Of a stretch of DNA of 64,000 nucleotides, positions 11,687 through 28,069 are shown piece after piece (the stretch's first letter is position 1; every line of letters starts with the position of its first letter). The stretch comes from Obrimoposthia wandeli. Taxonomy: Eukaryota. A program made the position numbers and the translations under genes. Where the stretch lies: assembly GCA_977020255.1 (NCBI GenBank), contig CDROCS010006454.1, positions 1 through 64,000 of the forward strand, in the 5' to 3' direction. The notes below the pieces were generated by a model. That model was not told the DNA's origin, did no database searches, and was given only the letters and a program-made list of their open reading frames with translations.

Positions 11687-13255
11687 TTGACACTATTATT
11701 AAACGATTATATCGCTGCTTTTGCTCAAGAAAAGCATATTACTTCTTTGAGCCAATTTGGTCGCGGTATAGAGCGTGAAACACTTAGGGTGCTGCCACAA
11801 GCTCGACTATCTGAACAACCGCACAGTGAACGCTTAGGCTCAGCATTAACGCATCCCAATATAACAACTGACTATTCAGAGACTTTACTTGAATTTATTA
11901 CACCGGTTAGTTATGCCCCAGAAACGGTTATTGCTCAGCTCGAAGACGTACAGAAATTTACTTTAAGCCAGCTTGACGGTGAACTATTATGGCCGATGAG
12001 CATGCCGTGCTTTGTTGAAGATGATGATAAAATACCGTTAGCACAATACGGTAAATCGAATATCGGTAAGATGAAAACGGTTTATCGCCAAGGTTTAAAA
12101 AATCGTTACGGCAGTATGATGCAGGTTATTTCTGGCATCCATTTCAATTTTTCTTTTCCGAAAGATTTTTGGCAATCAATGCAAACGATTGAACAAAATA
12201 CCGATGCACTTGATGATTATATTTCTGATAAATATTTCGCACTATTAAGAAACTATAAACGCTTTTGTTGGTTAATCCCTTATTTATACGGTAGCTCACC
12301 GGCTATTTGTAGTTCTTTTTTAAAAAATAAAGCGACTGATTTACCTTTTAAAAAATCTGAAAAAGGTTATATGTACCTTGAGTATGCTACGTCATTGCGT
12401 ATGAGCGATTTGGGTTATACCAATAGCGAACAGTCATCGTTGCAAATTTGTTATAACAATTTATCAGGTTATTTAGATGGGGTGAAAAATGCCATTAATT
12501 TACCGTCGAAAAAATTTGAAAAAATTGGTCTTAAAGTAGATGGAAAATATCAGCAACTCAATAGTAATGTACTACAAATAGAAAATGAATTGTACGCACC
12601 GGTTCGTCCAAAATGTGTTGCCCAAGCCGGTGAAAAACCTTCTGAAGCACTAAAAAATCGAGGTGTTGAGTATATTGAAGTTAGAGCGCTCGACGTTAAT
12701 CCTTGGTCAGCAACAGGAATAACCGTTGAGCAAGTTAGATTTTTAGACATTTTTTTAACTTTCTGTATGTTCGAACCGAGTGAGATTCTTAATTGTAGTG
12801 AACAAGCAACTTGTGAAGAAAATATGGATGCTATTGTTGTTCGAGGTCGCGATCCTGCTTTACGATTACATGACAATGCAGAAGAAAAATCGGTTAAGCA
12901 GTGGGGCGGAGAAATTTTTACAAAAATGGCTGATGTTGCTACGTTATTAGATCAAGCTAACGGCAGTGATTTATATCGTGCTGTTTTTGAGACTGAAGCT
13001 GCGAAGATTAATGACGCGAGTTTAACGCCTTCAGCAAAAATTTTAGCATCGGTTGTTGGTGAAAATAAATCATTAATAAAAACGGCACTCGATAGAGCAA
13101 TTGAGTATCGTGAGCAACTTTTAGCTAATGACTATCAAGAGTTTACGGAACAATATTTTGTCGATGCTGCGGCAGAGTCCTTGCAAAAACAAGCAGATAT
13201 TGAAATGAATGATAAGCTTGATTTTGACGCATTTCTAAAAGACTATTTTTCTTAA
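11687..13255 (+). CDS. gshA: Glutamate-cysteine ligase
   Basis: RGIERETLRV, ITTDYSETLLEFITP, WPMSMPC, SGIHFNFS, LQIENELY, GVEYIEVRALD; TTG start. Confidence 0.96.
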   Translation: MTLLLNDYIAAFAQEKHITSLSQFGRGIERETLRVLPQARLSEQPHSERLGSALTHPNITTDYSETLLEFITPVSYAPETVIAQLEDVQKFTLSQLDGELLWPMSMPCFVEDDDKIPLAQYGKSNIGKMKTVYRQGLKNRYGSMMQVISGIHFNFSFPKDFWQSMQTIEQNTDALDDYISDKYFALLRNYKRFCWLIPYLYGSSPAICSSFLKNKATDLPFKKSEKGYMYLEYATSLRMSDLGYTNSEQSSLQICYNNLSGYLDGVKNAINLPSKKFEKIGLKVDGKYQQLNSNVLQIENELYAPVRPKCVAQAGEKPSEALKNRGVEYIEVRALDVNPWSATGITVEQVRFLDIFLTFCMFEPSEILNCSEQATCEENMDAIVVRGRDPALRLHDNAEEKSVKQWGGEIFTKMADVATLLDQANGSDLYRAVFETEAAKINDASLTPSAKILASVVGENKSLIKTALDRAIEYREQLLANDYQEFTEQYFVDAAAESLQKQADIEMNDKLDFDAFLKDYFS

Positions 13256-13410
13256 TCGTTACTGCGCTTAATATTGATGCTAACCTTGGTTTTAATCTTG
13301 AGCTTTAGGTGAGTTTCGAAATATTTATTGGAATTTTCAGTGACACTGTTTTTAGATCACAACTTATCCAGAGTCACTATTTAAGAATTATCATTTATTA
13401 AATTACAGGC

Positions 13411-13439
13411 AAAAAAATAGCGCGTTAATGTAACGCGCT
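13411..13439 (-). terminator. Minus-strand intrinsic terminator with no annotated gene upstream
   Basis: On minus: AGCGCGTTA-CAT-TAACGCGCT-A-TTTTTTT. Confidence 0.75.
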
Positions 13440-13706
13440 GCAAATAATAAGAAAGTAGTCCAGGGAGGTTTACTTTCAAGTTATTCGACTTCGGCTTTTT
13501 TTATTAGTTCATTTTTATTCAAAATAGATCTTTTATTTTTTAGTTCGCCCTAGCTAGCTATAAAATCATAAATCAATGCTGGTTTGTTCAGCTACAATTC
13601 CCTGCTATTACTGGCTACGCTGTTATATTTTATGATATTGCTTTATTGGCTTCCTATCACTCTAAAGTTAATCGTTCATCTTGCTTTAATTCTCTATTTG
13701 TCTTGT

Positions 13707-13781
13707 TTATACCTCTTTAGCTGAGTCGTTAACTATCGATACTTTGTCGTTTGAGAAGCCATTGATGCTCAAACTACTCAT
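13707..13781 (-). CDS. Candidate small protein, 24 aa (MSSLSINGFSNDKVSIVNDSAKEV)
   Basis: ATG..TAA frame read manually; GAGGAG 12 nt upstream; lies upstream of the 13411-13439 terminator. Confidence 0.3.
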   Translation of the reverse strand: MSSLSINGFSNDKVSIVNDSAKEV

Positions 13782-13839
13782 AATATGAAACCACTCCTCT
13801 TTACATTATTTAGCGGTAGCGAATCGAAGAAAATCAGAC

Positions 13840-13930
13840 AAAAAAAAGCACATTTATTAAATAATAAATGTGCAGTAGAACAATGAAGATTATAAACACT
13901 AAAATATAAACACTAAGGAATAACACTCTC
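13840..13930 (-). ncRNA. Candidate sigma-E-dependent small RNA (~90 nt), MicA-positioned
   Basis: GGAACTA-N16-TCATA promoter at 13964-13937, then an ORF-free U/G-rich body, an 11-bp perfect hairpin (13848-13873) and U8. Confidence 0.55.
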
Positions 13931-13936
13931 ATATAG

Positions 13937-13964
13937 TATGAACATCAAAAGTTAAGTTAGTTCC
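13937..13964 (-). promoter_or_regulatory. Putative RpoE (sigma-E) promoter
   Basis: -35 GGAACTA (13964-13958), 16-nt spacer, -10 TCATA (13941-13937), versus consensus GGAACTT-N16-TCAAA/TCTRA. Confidence 0.55.
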
Positions 13965-14112
13965 TCAGCCCAAATAAAATTTTTAATTTATTAAAGATAA
14001 ATGTTGTGAATACACTATTTTTTAGAAAAATTTAATGATGCTTAAGAGAAATAAGTAAAGAAAAAGTCCATTAAATGACGAGTTTAACCTGATAAGTCAC
14101 AAATATTCTGGC

Positions 14113-14772
14113 ATGATAAAAGCAATTCAATTATACGTAACTGTGTGCATGACTTTTATTAAAACATTTATCATTTCAACATTGGCGTGCTTAACATTAT
14201 CAAGTTGTGCGACAAGTCCCCCTAAAAAACCTGAAAACCTATGTGAAATATTCCGTGAACATCGAGATTGGTACTTTGCTGCCAAGGAAATGCGTGAACG
14301 GTGGGGTGTTCCCATTCATGTGCCAATGAGTATGATGTATCAAGAAAGCTCTTTTAAAGCTGATGCTTTGCCCCCTAAAGACTATATTTTAGGCTTTATT
14401 CCTTGGGGCCGTGTTAGTAGTGCCTATGGCTATTCACAGGCTAAAACGATGACATGGGATGATTACATCAGGGAAACGGATAACTCTGGTGCTGACCGTG
14501 ATGACTTTGAAGATGCTATCGACTTTATGGGATGGTTTATTTTTAAAACGCAAAAAATTAACAAAGTCTCAAAATGGGATGCTTATGGCCAATATTTAAA
14601 TTACCACGAAGGCTGGGGTGGTTTTAAACGCAAGAGCTATAAGAAAAAATCTTGGTTAGTGAAGGTTGCTCGAAAAGTCGATAATCGTGCTAAACGTTAT
14701 GGTGGTCAGCTTAAAAGTTGCGAAGAGGAGCTGGATCACGGCTGGTTATGGCGTTTTGTCTTTGAGGATTAG
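14113..14772 (+). CDS. Lipoprotein with a transglycosylase SLT-like domain (ATG at 14149 is the likely start)
   Basis: Lipobox LSSC; MMYQESSF catalytic Glu, SSAYGYSQA, YLNYHEGWGG. Confidence 0.85.
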   Translation: MIKAIQLYVTVCMTFIKTFIISTLACLTLSSCATSPPKKPENLCEIFREHRDWYFAAKEMRERWGVPIHVPMSMMYQESSFKADALPPKDYILGFIPWGRVSSAYGYSQAKTMTWDDYIRETDNSGADRDDFEDAIDFMGWFIFKTQKINKVSKWDAYGQYLNYHEGWGGFKRKSYKKKSWLVKVARKVDNRAKRYGGQLKSCEEELDHGWLWRFVFED

Positions 14773-14830
14773 TACCTTTAAGTAGCGGGAAAATCCAACT
14801 TACCAATAATGCACTGTCATATTTCTATTT

Positions 14831-14886
14831 TATACCCGCTCTATTTTGTAAGGCTAAGATATGCTTTATAAAATAGCACGGGTATA
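14831..14886. mobile_element. 56-bp hairpin with TATACCCG...CGGGTATA ends; probable mini-MITE of a second ERIC-like family
   Basis: TATACCCG-CT-CTATTTT-GTAAGGC-TAAGATAT-GCTTTAT-AAAATAG-CA-CGGGTATA imperfect long inverted repeat with TATA termini. Confidence 0.5.
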
Positions 14887-15498
14887 GTTGTATCTAGGGG
14901 AGTGATTTTTTGCATACCTGGGGTATTTGGTTGATATATTTATTACACCAGCACCCTATTTTTCAATCGATAATTGACTGCTAATTATCACATTAGTGAG
15001 TTATCTTGTTGATATAATTCGTGCGTATAGCTCATCTTCTATTCCTAGCTGGCAGGCCTAATTTTGCAGAGGTTGGATTCAGACAATATGATTAACCTTA
15101 ACCTTAACTTTAACTTTAGCAGGTTTTCGAACGATCAATATTATTGGGCATTGAGCATTGTCATTAACAGCTGATTTTTTTAATTTTTGATTGGAAGAAA
15201 CTAGTTCATAGTAACGCTAAATATTTACCTGCCTGTTACGTTCACGCCAGTTTCTTAAATCTATTTTGTACTCTTTTTATTCTTTTTCTAGTATTCGATT
15301 TTATTTTTCACTGATATTTGTACTTATTAAATACTGCATAGTTCTTGCCAACGTTAATTGGAATGGTATTAAATTTAAGCAATTCTAGCGTGAGTAAGGC
15401 TTATAAAATAAGCAAATTTTTATTAAAAAAAAACTTCATGTTTTTGTGAAAAATTGATTGCAAAATACAAAGGTTATTTCTTATGGGGCTTGCATTTG

Positions 15499-15679
15499 TT
15501 ATCCACAGAAATTGTGGAAAGTTGATCCTTAGATCTAGTGTTGTGGATAACTTTGTTATTAACTTTCTTTGTGAGGACTTCTATCCACAAAAAGTTATAA
15601 AAATAGAATATTTATCTATTTTTTAATAAAAGGTTATCCTGAATGATCGTTAGGTATTGATCCTTAACCAAGATTGATC
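15499..15679. promoter_or_regulatory. DnaA-box cluster with GATC sites (DARS-, datA- or origin-like)
   Basis: TTATCCACA 15499-15507, TGTGGAAAG 15513-15521, TGTGGATAA 15542-15550, CTATCCACA 15581-15589; GATC at 15524, 15532, 15645, 15659, 15676. Confidence 0.7.
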
Positions 15680-15863
15680 TAATGCTAAAATAATGCAGGC
15701 ACTAAGTTGAATTTATCACGTATTGTTAAGCAAATAATTAGCGTGTTTCTCGGCTCATAACTAAGGTATTTATTAGCTGTTTAATTTGTTGCTGTCTTGT
15801 TGTTTCTAGGTAGAAGCGCTAGCTGCTTGTGCTATTGATTTGATTGATAGTGACAAAGTAAGT

Positions 15864-15899
15864 AAAAAAAAGCCCCGTTGCTTGATGGCAACGAGGCTT
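15864..15899 (-). terminator. Terminator after corB
   Basis: Minus strand AAGCCTCGTTGCC...GCAACGGGGCTTTTTTTT. Confidence 0.75.
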
Positions 15900-15923
15900 A
15901 CTTTGATTTTTGTTAGTAATATT

Positions 15924-17207
15924 TTAGTTTTCGAAAACTTCACCATCATAAAAGTCAGGTAAGATCCTAACCGTTTTAATCATGTTATCTTTCACTTCAA
16001 TGATCTCAAGTGGGTAGCCTGAGATCCTAACACTTAAGTTCGCTTCTGGAATATCTTCAAGATACTCTAAAATTAAACCATTAATCGTTTTAGGGCCATC
16101 GGTAGGAAAGTTCCATGTCATTTCTTTGTTTACGTCACGAACCGTTGCACTGCCGTCAACCAAGTAACTACCGTCAGGCTGAATATTTACTTCATCACTG
16201 CTGGTCGGAGTCATCGTTGTAGTGAAATCTCCGACGATTTCTTCAAGAATATCTTCTAATGTTACTAAACCTTGGATATCACCATATTCGTCAACCACAA
16301 GGCCTAGGCGCTCCTTAGCACGTTGAAATTTTAGTAACTGCACATTCAGTGGTGTGCCTTCAGGAATAAAGTAAAGCTCTCGTACAGCACGTAGCAGCGT
16401 TGCTTTAGTGAATTGCCCTTTTGATACTAATCGCAAAGCATCGCGGACATGAACGTAGCCGACAGCATCGTCAATATTATCGCGATATAATAAAACACGT
16501 GTATGGTTTGATTGTGTTAGTTGCTTTTGAATACGTTTCCAATCTTCGTTGATATCAATACCGACTAATTCATTACGCGGGATCATAATATCTTCAACGG
16601 TAACGTTCTCTAAATCTAGAATGCCAACGAGCATATCTTGATCTCGAGATTTTAACATCGCACCCGACTCATTTACTACGGTACGTAATTCTTCAGAGCT
16701 TAAGCTATGCTGTTCACGTTGCTCTGAACTAATACCTAACATAGCTAAAATACCATTGGTGATCCAATTGACAGCGATAACAAAAGGGTAGAGTACTCTT
16801 AACAACAAAGTCAGCACCAGTGAACTTGGAAATGCTACTTTTTCTGGATACAGTGCTGCTAAAGTTTTAGGGGTTATTTCTGCAAAGATTAATATGACTA
16901 AAGTAAGCAATAAGCCGGAATAGAATACTCCCGCATCGCCATAAAGCCGTTGAGCAATAATACCTGTGATAAGCGTTGCAAATATATTGACTAAGTTATT
17001 ACCGATTAGGATCAGGCCGATCAACTTATCAGGTTTGGCCAATAATTTACTGACACGTTTAGCGCCATTATGGTTTTGTTTTTCAAGATGTTTTAACCGA
17101 TAACGATTAATCGACATCATGCCTGTTTCAGAGCCAGAGAAATAGGCTGATATAAATATGAGAATGCCAAGCACGACAAACAGCATATCGGTAGAGATGT
17201 TATCCAA
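15924..17207 (-). CDS. corB: HlyC/CorC-family (CNNM-CBS-CorC) magnesium/cobalt transporter CorB/YfjD
   Basis: SAYFSGSETG, ILIGNNLVN, FAEITPKT, DIMIPR, VVDEYG..GLVTLEDILEEIVG. Confidence 0.92.
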   Translation of the reverse strand: MDNISTDMLFVVLGILIFISAYFSGSETGMMSINRYRLKHLEKQNHNGAKRVSKLLAKPDKLIGLILIGNNLVNIFATLITGIIAQRLYGDAGVFYSGLLLTLVILIFAEITPKTLAALYPEKVAFPSSLVLTLLLRVLYPFVIAVNWITNGILAMLGISSEQREQHSLSSEELRTVVNESGAMLKSRDQDMLVGILDLENVTVEDIMIPRNELVGIDINEDWKRIQKQLTQSNHTRVLLYRDNIDDAVGYVHVRDALRLVSKGQFTKATLLRAVRELYFIPEGTPLNVQLLKFQRAKERLGLVVDEYGDIQGLVTLEDILEEIVGDFTTTMTPTSSDEVNIQPDGSYLVDGSATVRDVNKEMTWNFPTDGPKTINGLILEYLEDIPEANLSVRISGYPLEIIEVKDNMIKTVRILPDFYDGEVFEN

Positions 17208-26125: not shown

Positions 26126-28069
26126 ATGCAAGAATTAAAAAGCCGTTATCCCGTATTAGCGCAGGCAAAAGCTCACACTTACATTGATTCAGCGACCTAC
26201 GATGCCATGTATCAGCAGTCAGTTGAACAGCCTGAAGTTTTCTGGGCGGAACAAGCTGATAAGTTTCTTGATTGGTATAAACCTTGGGACAGTGTGTCAG
26301 ATGTTGACTTGAAAGCTGGAGATATTAAATGGTTTTCTGGTGGTAAGCTTAATGTCAGTTATAACTGTATTGATCGTCACTTAGCCAACAAAGCAAATGA
26401 CACGGCTATTATCTGGGAAGGTGATGATCCCAATGAAGATAAAAAAATAACTTACCAAGAGCTACATGATCATGTCTGTCGCTTTGCTAATTTATTAAAA
26501 GCTCGTGGCGTGAAAAAAGGCGACCGAGTTTGTATTTATATGCCGATGATCCCTGAGATCGGTTATGCAATGTTAGCTTGTGCTCGTATAGGTGCTGTTC
26601 ATTCCGTAGTGTTTGGTGGCTTTTCTACTGAAGCTATCCGCTCTCGGATTATTGATGCTGACTGTAAAGTGGTTGTTACCTCTGATGAAAGTTTGCGTGG
26701 CGGTCGTGTTATTCCATTAAAAGTGAATGTTGACGCAGCTGTTGCTGATTGCCCTGATGTGCACTCAGTTATTGTGGTTAAACGCACCGGCGGTGACGTT
26801 GCATGGAACGATCAAATCGATATTAATTACCAAGAAGAAGTGGCAAAACAACCTGCTACATGTACACCAGAAGTTATGGATGCTGAAGATCCACTCTTTA
26901 TTTTGTATACCTCAGGCTCAACAGGGACACCTAAAGGTGTTTTACATACTTGTGGTGGCTATTTACTTTATGCTGCAATGACTCATAAATATGTCTTTGA
27001 CTATAAAGACGGTGAAGTTTATTGGTGTACGGCTGATGCCGGGTGGATCACAGGTCATTCATACATATTTTACGGACCATTAGCTAATGGCGCTACTACG
27101 TTAGTCTTTGAAGGCGTACCCACTTACCCGGATGCAGGACGTTTTTGGGAAGTGTGTGATAAGCACCAAGTTAATATTTTTTATACCGCGCCAACCGCTA
27201 TTCGTGCGCTAATGAGTGTGGGTGACAGCTTTGTTGAAAAAGCTGACTTATCATCACTACGTATTTTAGGCACTGTTGGTGAGCCAATTAATCCAGAAGC
27301 ATGGCATTGGTATTATGAAGTGGTTGGCAAAAATAAATGCCCTATTGTTGATACATGGTGGCAAACGGAAACCGGTGGCATATTAATTACATCGCTACCA
27401 GGGGCAGTTGACATGAAGCCAGGTGCCGCAGGTAAGCCATTTTTTGGTGTTCAGCCTGCATTATTCGATAAAGACGGCAATACGCTTGAAGGTGAAAACC
27501 AAGGTTTATTAATGATGACAGGCAGTTGGCCAGGTCAATTACGTAGTGTTTATGGTGATCACGATCGCTTCTATCAGACCTATTTAAGCCAATATCCAGG
27601 TAACTACTTTACGGGTGATGGTGCTAAACGTGACGAAGACGGCTTTTATTGGATCACAGGCCGCGTTGATGACGTATTAAATGTTTCTGGCCATAGATTG
27701 GGCACAGCAGAAATTGAAAGCGCTCTAGTATTGCATCCTGCGGTTGCTGAAGCTGCCGTGGTTGGTTACCCTCATGACATTAAAGGCCAAGGTGTTTATG
27801 CTTATGTAACCTTGATGAGCAATGCAACAGAGTCTGATGAACTGTTAGCCGAACTCACCGAGTTTGTTGCGAAAGAGCTAGGTCGTTTTGCTAAGCCTGA
27901 TTATATTCAATATGCCCCAGGTTTACCTAAAACTCGTTCCGGTAAAATTATGCGTCGTATTTTACGAAAAATTGCGGAAAACGATATAGATACCTTAGGA
28001 GATATCTCAACATTGGCTGAGCCGGCTGTTGTAGAGCACTTAGTGAGTAATAGAATCGTAAAAAGTTAA
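26126..28069 (+). CDS. acs: Acetyl-CoA synthetase
   Basis: [46 protein letters not shown]. Confidence 0.97.

Follow-up and report, generated by a model that had tools for sequence, protein, structure and literature searches.

A non-coding island of approximately 260 bp, located at positions 15334-15593 on the forward strand of the window (the whole 64,000-nucleotide stretch of DNA analysed here), was found to carry a group of DnaA boxes that some 90 related marine bacteria retain in single copy and almost letter-for-letter. The island, which we treat as one functional unit, is very probably a functional DnaA-binding cis-element, and we put the probability that it is a chromosomal non-coding DARS-type DnaA-reactivating site at roughly 0.5. 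Its parts are, in order, a flank motif, box I, 5 bp, box IIa (head-to-head with box I), a spacer of 18-29 bp, box IIb, 3 bp and box III, to which the subclass represented by the window adds a box IV. Reactivation of ADP-DnaA is favoured over a datA-like or titration role by three features, namely the pair of head-to-head boxes, a flank of the DARS1 type and the fact that no IHF site was found.

The bacterial contig to which the window belongs is 99.7 kb long, and the window covers its first 64 kb. The assembly from which it derives (1.35 Gb in 6912 contigs) contains many different bacteria, with 20 or more distinct full-length copies of dnaA and no fewer than 23 of mnmG, and is therefore a host-plus-microbiome or metagenome-like assembly. 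There is no whole chromosome for the window's organism, hence the chromosomal position of the element was taken entirely from relatives. A second, related bacterium in the same assembly (contig C4620) carries a 28-bp-spacer form of the element.

A gene-free gap of about 1.15 kb had been described in an earlier reading of the sequence alone (hereafter, the sequence-only reading), and was measured here as 1151 bp (14773-15923). It is flanked by two converging genes, a point absent from that reading: on the left, a + strand gene encoding a 219-aa lipoprotein with an SLT_4 transglycosylase domain and, on the right, a - strand yfjD/corB-like gene of the CNNM family (NCBIfam PRK11573), past which follow a ypjD-like gene, a Cu/Zn efflux gene, ffh and rpsP. 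Since both flanking genes converge on the gap, no promoter of either would be expected inside it; a strong, bidirectional yfjD terminator is present at 15870-15899. No ORF of 60 aa or more was found in the gap, and the smaller ORFs, all below 48 aa and none of them conserved, were rejected as coding candidates. Searches of 13000-17000 for Rfam families, with E values up to 1, returned nothing beyond chance matches on the yfjD terminator.

The first ~560 bp of the gap, from the stop codon of the SLT-lipoprotein gene to the conserved island (14773-15333), aligned to no relative and were not repeated within the window. The whole gap measures only ~335 bp in Colwellia proper, compared with 1151 bp in the window, and the 14773-15333 stretch is a lineage-specific insertion. 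A repeat or MITE origin for the non-conserved parts of the gap was considered and rejected, with no second copy present in the window. In an echinoderm metatranscriptome run (X20), the only contigs near the element covered 13604-13792 and 13948-14143, in the spacer between gshA and the lipoprotein gene.

Four DnaA boxes, two of them perfect, had been reported within 91 bp, and all four were re-found at 15499-15589. The perfect box I (TTATCCACA; 15499-15507, + strand) is faced, across the 5-bp spacer GAAAT (15508-15512, + strand), by box IIa on the - strand (TGTGGAAAG, or CTTTCCACA when read on the - strand; 15513-15521), which confirms the opposite orientation and the 5-bp distance noted for the first two boxes. 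A variable spacer, here of 20 bp (15522-15541) and containing GATC at 15524-15527 and 15532-15535, leads to the perfect box IIb (TGTGGATAA; 15542-15550, - strand), 3 bp past which lies a weak box III in the same orientation (TGTTATTAA; 15554-15562, - strand), such that IIb and III together form a 'double DnaA box'. Box IV (CTATCCACA; 15581-15589, + strand) and the AAAA that follows it, to 15593, close the conserved island on its right side. Three features had been missed in the sequence-only reading: the split architecture, the weak box III and the ~165 bp of conserved sequence upstream of the boxes. The chance of finding three boxes with no more than one mismatch inside 91 bp was P = 0.005 for this window.

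The YfjD protein was utilized as a query to retrieve 80 loci from named genomes. A head-to-head pair was found just downstream of yfjD in 13 loci of Colwellia, Cognaticolwellia and Thalassotalea, as well as in a further contig of the same assembly (L007); in all named relatives with the element, it lies just past the 3' end of yfjD. No such pair was present at the yfjD locus in Pseudoalteromonas, Shewanella, Vibrio, Aeromonas and others. A 21-nt core (TTATCCACAGAAATTGTGGAA), searched with up to one mismatch in a sample of 401 genomes from the window's GTDB family, was detected in 110 of them and was single-copy in 108, whilst the reversed control gave no hits; exact-pattern searches of this kind miss diverged copies, and the 401-genome sets are samples. 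Conservation of the boxes among relatives had been suggested as a check, and the element proved to be conserved within the Colwellia clade. Eighty of the core sites were fetched and 93 distinct loci compared, 83 of which have one architecture in common, though these 83 species are related, and the counts given below are not independent events and overstate the independent support. A pattern written for the split layout matched nine of 401 genomes drawn from across the GTDB order, and every one of the nine falls within this clade.

The core shared by these loci is TTG-TTATCCACA-GAAAT-TGTGGAAA, with TGTGGAAAN as the general form of box IIa, and the shared right module is TGTGNATAA-N3-TGTKNNTAA followed by CTTT; unlike both of these, the spacer and the outer flanks vary freely. 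Box I is TTATCCACA in 81 of the 83 species and TTTTCCACA in two. The spacer between boxes I and IIa is always 5 bp long and is mostly GAAAT, with GAAAA, GATAT, GAATT and GAAAC as variants, and box IIa (TGTGGAAA) is near-invariant, with only its last base varying. Variation in box IIb is confined to the free N position (TGTG[G/T/C/A]ATAA; consensus TTWTNCACA) and occurs without covariation in box I, which is fixed; the constraint would therefore be one of protein recognition rather than of an inverted-repeat stem. Box III (TGTKNNTAA) is held at a fixed distance of 3 bp from IIb.

The IIa-IIb spacer fell into three length classes, one of 18-20 bp (62 species), one of 28-29 bp (17-19 species) and one of 32 bp (three to four species), the window belonging to the 20-bp class. 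Of the 42 species in the 20-bp class, 41 have box IV (yTATCCACAAAA, + oriented, at +82), which hardly any species of the other classes carries, and conservation ends directly after this box. Two further ideas regarding the spacer were tried and rejected. A dyad or hairpin in the 28-29 bp spacers was not borne out (best stems of 4.4-4.8 bp, against 3.8-3.9 bp in shuffled sequences), and helical phasing of the 18-20 and 28-29 bp classes was only suggestive, the classes being clades that represent few independent events and the centre-to-centre distances not being whole turns.

In the alignment to a Cognaticolwellia MAG (L011), the closest distinct relative, 15334-15592 was the only part of the gap to align, with an identity of 78.6%, equal to that of the neighbouring coding DNA. 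The ~165 bp conserved upstream of the boxes comprise GCATA..CTTGCCAA, a small hairpin, an A-run and T-run, TTGCAA and TatTGGGCT. The first of these blocks, GCATAgttCTTGCCAA (15336-15351, + strand), contains GCATA and TTGCCAA, each ~90% conserved in the 83-species alignment. The small hairpin and the T-rich run that follows it (15399-15413, + strand) occur in the same place in relatives with different stems, as read by eye (CTAGCT/AGCTAG and CTACGC/GCGTAG), and may terminate transcription of the SLT-lipoprotein gene that precedes them. An A-run, 7 nt, a T-run, AAAAA and TTGCAA then occupy 15425-15463 (+ strand), in columns that are 80-99% conserved, with TTGCAA itself (15458-15463, + strand) resembling a -35 hexamer. 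The flank motif TTATGGGGCTTG (15481-15492, + strand) ends 6 bp before box I; a GG in its register is present in 81 of the 83 species, and the register is common to the rsxA/MATE-linked cores of other genera.

The five GATCs reported previously (15524, 15532, 15645, 15659 and 15676) were found to lie within 156 bp, the last three spaced by 14 and 17 bp, against an expectation of 0.40 for 156 bp (window density of one per 393 bp). As a cluster these are weak evidence, with a scan-level P of 0.083, and another cluster of five in 189 bp lies at 26372. The proposal of Dam/SeqA gating is partly supported, with one spacer GATC alone conserved in position: a GATC at spacer offset 10 (window position 15532) was found in 27 of the 42 species of the 20-bp class, compared with 2.4 expected from composition, and SeqA was present in all five carriers tested among the relatives. 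A GATC at offset 2 (window position 15524) occurred in 13 of these 42 species, and the other spacer classes have no GATC, except for two of three 32-bp spacers, which carry one at offset 10. Conservation of the spacer GATC is real, but at the level of a subclade, and could signify a methylation-sensitive assembly or occlusion by SeqA after fork passage.

The AT-rich tract that carries the remaining three GATCs (15594-15679; GATCs at 15645, 15659 and 15676) lies outside the conserved element. It is kept only in a near-conspecific genome (G012), with which the window shares ~95% identity over the gap, and could be aligned neither in L011 nor in L012. A promoter-like match (TTAACC-16-TAAAAT, with TG) at 15664-15691 overlaps two of its three GATCs, and the tract may belong to something else. 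The adjoining stretch at 15685-15811 (context 15664-15905) has all of its 127 bases in common with G012, whilst the flanks differ by ~5%. With the promoter-like match and the bidirectional terminator at 15870-15899, this region could be an sRNA of ~200 nt, but its fold z-score is only -1.24 and the stretch has no alignment in L011.

The position of the element on the chromosome was determined in 20 complete relatives, in which it lies 0.64-1.32 Mb from dnaA, corresponding to 0.13-0.29 chromosome lengths (median ~0.19), or ~40% of the way down a replichore in its origin-proximal half. In G012, the element is at 4,024,399 of 4,741,350 bp and dnaA at 370. This distance and the absence of any GC-skew switch in the 64-kb window, in which skew is positive throughout, argue that the element is not an origin, in agreement with the earlier view that it is not the primary oriC; as also stated there, neither dnaA nor gidA (mnmG) is nearby, with no match to either on the contig. 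A relic or secondary replication origin, in which the boxes would stand beside an AT-rich, GATC-bearing unwinding element, had been offered as an alternative, and the boxes do adjoin the AT-rich three-GATC tract (15590-15679). That tract, however, is conserved no further than the near-conspecific genome and is unalignable in the next closest, no conserved DUE was found, and the element abuts yfjD in most species, which therefore leaves no room for one. Together with the missing skew switch and the 0.64-1.32 Mb to dnaA in the 20 relatives, this excludes an origin for practical purposes.

A site at which DnaA is titrated or inactivated, as at datA, is an alternative reading. Its box cluster would sequester DnaA or stimulate ATP hydrolysis, and the initiation potential would be lowered until the site is duplicated. 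The five boxes in 91 bp, comprising one perfect double box and three more, would suit such a sink, as would the single copy in the origin-proximal half of a replichore; a double box of the same kind is found at E. coli datA, polA and purH, and ADP release and ATP hydrolysis are indistinguishable from sequence alone. Yet datA activity requires IHF (PMC5742627), and no IHF consensus was found between the oppositely oriented boxes or at any fixed position, which counts against the 'datA-like' label of the sequence-only reading. Nor does datA have a flank of the DARS1 type or an invariant head-to-head pair with 5-bp spacing, and the element lies at ~0.19 of the chromosome, compared with 0.10 for datA. 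On balance, we regard a sink as rather unlikely. In another reading, the island would be a DnaA-controlled transcription signal, with a promoter (TTGCAA at 15458, the A/T tracts serving as a UP-like element) firing into the boxes or with the boxes acting as a roadblock at the converging gene ends; the unit would then serve an unannotated RNA. A conserved TTGCAA/TTGAAA hexamer with upstream A- and T-tracts does lie 35-41 bp before box I, and E. coli DARS1 is itself situated in the uvrB promoter region. Against this, no acceptable -10 follows TTGCAA, the expected T(-7) being G in ~90% of species, and a promoter scan gave no match at this site. Nothing is conserved downstream of box IV, and the yfjD stop codon is reached ~45-60 bp past the element in Colwellia proper. 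Nor is an RNA apparent, with no Rfam match, no RNA contig over the gap in public runs (contigs only, and weak data), and no covariation of IIb with box I that would indicate an RNA stem. Such a signal is possible but weak as an explanation, and we consider it very unlikely.

Head-to-head 5-bp pairs are otherwise rare in these genomes, numbering zero to three per genome (control, 0), with zero to two per genome for the pattern TTATCC-N8-TGTGGATAA (control, 0), and fall at two further conserved loci, A and B. Locus A is situated in the interval between rsxA and a MATE transporter gene in the Alteromonadaceae and between rsxA and uvrB in the Vibrionaceae, and carries a contiguous I-5-II-3-III core; it was seen in L091, L092, L094, L095, L098 and about 30 further loci, and corresponds in position to DARS1 of E. 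coli. Where a genome has the yfjD-type site, its locus A has lost the GGGCT flank, which is kept at the yfjD-type site. Locus B, of which no description was found in the literature searched, lies upstream of an ACT-domain gene, beside an ArsC-family gene and dapE, and faces pta or a patatin-like gene. It reads TTATCCACK-N5-TGTGGATAA-cct-TGTTGAGTA in many Alteromonadaceae (canonical form in L096, L188, L194, L196, L204, L206, L208, L213 and L214) and ATATCCACA-N5-TGTGGATAT in the Colwellia clade, as at G012:C1:2116268 (L181) and G001:C1:2467132.

A role of the yfjD-type site as a substitute for another canonical DARS was ruled out, given that a relaxed pattern finds locus B kept in 15 of 20 genomes with the yfjD-type site. 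Because loci A and B persist, the window's element is a third, clade-specific locus rather than a replacement. Loci A and B were found at 0.29-0.47 of the chromosome in all Alteromonadaceae placed, inside and outside the clade, with the exception of Pseudoalteromonas locus A, at 0.22, and three further complete genomes from the family gave 0.29-0.46; only the yfjD-type site occupies the origin-proximal half in the Alteromonadaceae genomes placed. In another instance, Pseudoalteromonas sp. T1lg65 (L097; contig C2 of G004, at 127446) harbours a fully palindromic pair, TTATCCACA-TTTTT-TGTGGATAA, upstream of an agcS amino-acid carrier gene on its second replicon.

The DARS core is defined by boxes I and II in head-to-head orientation, 5 bp apart, together with box III (PMC6868365), and fixed spacing of the boxes is a common feature of the DARS family (PMC5742627). 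The window has the opposite pair with its 5-bp spacer (15499-15521) at a non-coding locus of conserved position relative to oriC. The DARS-like geometry first noticed from the letters is supported, the pair being invariant in ~83 species, single-copy and mid-replichore, with the DARS1 flank motif in register. Homology extends beyond the boxes, in that TatTGGGCT at -18 to -9 is common to the element, DARS1 and the MATE/uvrB-linked cores, which we consider supportive, though not formally defining, of membership in the DARS family. As for the protein partner, Gln208, Leu290 and Arg227 of DnaA are needed for DARS-dependent ADP release (PMC6868365), and all three are kept in the DnaA of G012 and G001, which also keeps R285, R399 and T435 and is 79-80% identical to E. 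coli DnaA (90% in domain IV). What holds for DnaA boxes in E. coli, and for the residues specific to DARS, should therefore carry over, though retention of these residues is a weak indication of a DARS, as they are widely conserved.

Several observations stand against a DARS. There is no contiguous I-5-II-3-III core, and nothing box-like occurs 2-5 bp after box IIa, and hence not at the 3 bp where box III would lie; the II-3-III pair is instead that of IIb and III, 18-29 bp downstream, whilst the adjacent box III is reported to be essential in E. coli DARS (PMC11724364). No match to IHF (WATCAANNNNTTR) and no Fis-like match was found at a fixed position in the 83 sequences, using consensus scans that weak sites could escape; the IHF and Fis sites at fixed distances that mark the DARS2 subtype were thus not found, nor was the IHF site between boxes that marks datA, the 18-20 bp gaps here being shorter than an IHF footprint. 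Furthermore, the positional match to DARS2 could be mere synteny within one clade and, with two other head-to-head loci present, a third reactivation site is not obviously needed.

If the element is nonetheless a DARS, a mechanism can be suggested. Two DnaA molecules would bind boxes I and IIa, head-to-head across the 5-bp spacer, a geometry in which ADP-DnaA would release ADP, as in E. coli, and rebind ATP. The high-affinity double box IIb+III, 18-29 bp away and oriented as IIa, would recruit DnaA and stabilise the assembly, a role that in a canonical DARS falls to box III directly beside box II, and box IV would add one further protomer in the window's subclass. Given the position-conserved GATC in the spacer, activity may be reset at fork passage, through hemimethylation and SeqA, at a site ~40% down the replichore. 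DnaA binding, nucleotide exchange and Dam/SeqA gating at the element are all inferred steps. The fullest form of this proposal, a third, lineage-specific DARS in which a catalytic pair and a recruiting double box some two helical turns apart are combined with a fixed Dam site into a replication-coupled timer, is unlikely. Were such a timer real, fork passage, by way of hemimethylation and SeqA binding, would switch DnaA reactivation at ~40% of the replichore, and the split would be a natural experiment indicating that box III need not touch box II.

To our knowledge, DARS function has been shown experimentally in E. coli only. Outside the enterobacteria, the published DARS are sequence homologues with a contiguous core (PMC8682772, PMC4245941), and include those of Vibrio cholerae and Shewanella denitrificans, hence a non-enterobacterial DARS is not new in itself, a point that had escaped the sequence-only reading. 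No DARS in Colwellia or its relatives, and no split core, was found in the literature searched. The element would be a naturally occurring and deeply conserved variant in which the two functions of DARS box II are kept apart; if it is active, the accepted rule of fixed I-II-III spacing would be relaxed, and bacteria could add DnaA-recharging sites at new chromosomal positions. The loci at rsxA-MATE/uvrB and ACT/ArsC-pta, which seem to be conserved across a large marine family, give a wider map of DnaA control beyond the model organism.

Amongst known systems, crtS of Vibrio cholerae is also a short non-coding site ~0.2 chromosome lengths from the origin, the duplication of which times a replication event, but it shows no sequence resemblance to the element and acts on RctB and chromosome 2 rather than on DnaA (PMC11724364, citing PMC10810183). 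E. coli datA is likewise non-coding and single-copy, with a box cluster that includes a double box and with a copy number that changes at fork passage; unlike the element, it needs an IHF site between its boxes, acts on ATP-DnaA, has no 5-bp head-to-head pair and lies nearer to oriC (0.10 of the chromosome, against ~0.19). The IIb-3-III arrangement is the 'double DnaA box' preferred by E. coli DnaA in vivo, and its spacer, AAG on the other strand, is that found at E. coli polA and nrdA (PMC11317965). DARS2, in the 455-bp rppH-mutH intergenic region, resembles the element in its core geometry (read from E. coli MG1655 as TTATCCCAG-ctttc-TGTGGATAA-cat-GGTGTAAGA), in a long conserved regulatory flank, in a GATC in the core region and in its position, at 0.206 of the chromosome (coordinates from PMC11317965) compared with a median of ~0.19. 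The element differs from it in having no IHF or Fis consensus, another neighbourhood and a split core, whereas the DARS2 homologues of V. cholerae and S. denitrificans keep the contiguous core (PMC8682772).

The closest resemblance is to DARS1, of the 101-bp bioD-uvrB intergenic region, to which the left half of the element is homologous. In both, boxes I and II are head-to-head across 5 bp, and the DARS1 flank (GATAGGGGCTGG-agacag-TTATCCACT) is in the same register as that of the window (TTATGGGGCTTG, 6 bp, TTATCCACA), with GGGCT at -13 to -9 in common. Both also have a perfect box with a weak box 3 bp on in the same orientation (TGTGGATAA-cca-TGTGTATTA in DARS1, the full core of which was read from E. 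coli MG1655 as TTATCCACT-attcc-TGTGGATAA-cca-TGTGTATTA), and both are non-coding, with no recognisable IHF or Fis site needed (PMC6868365). The element lies beside yfjD rather than uvrB and adds box IV and the ~165 bp of conserved upstream sequence; and whilst a single box II takes both roles in DARS1, in the element these would be split onto IIa and IIb, 18-29 bp apart.
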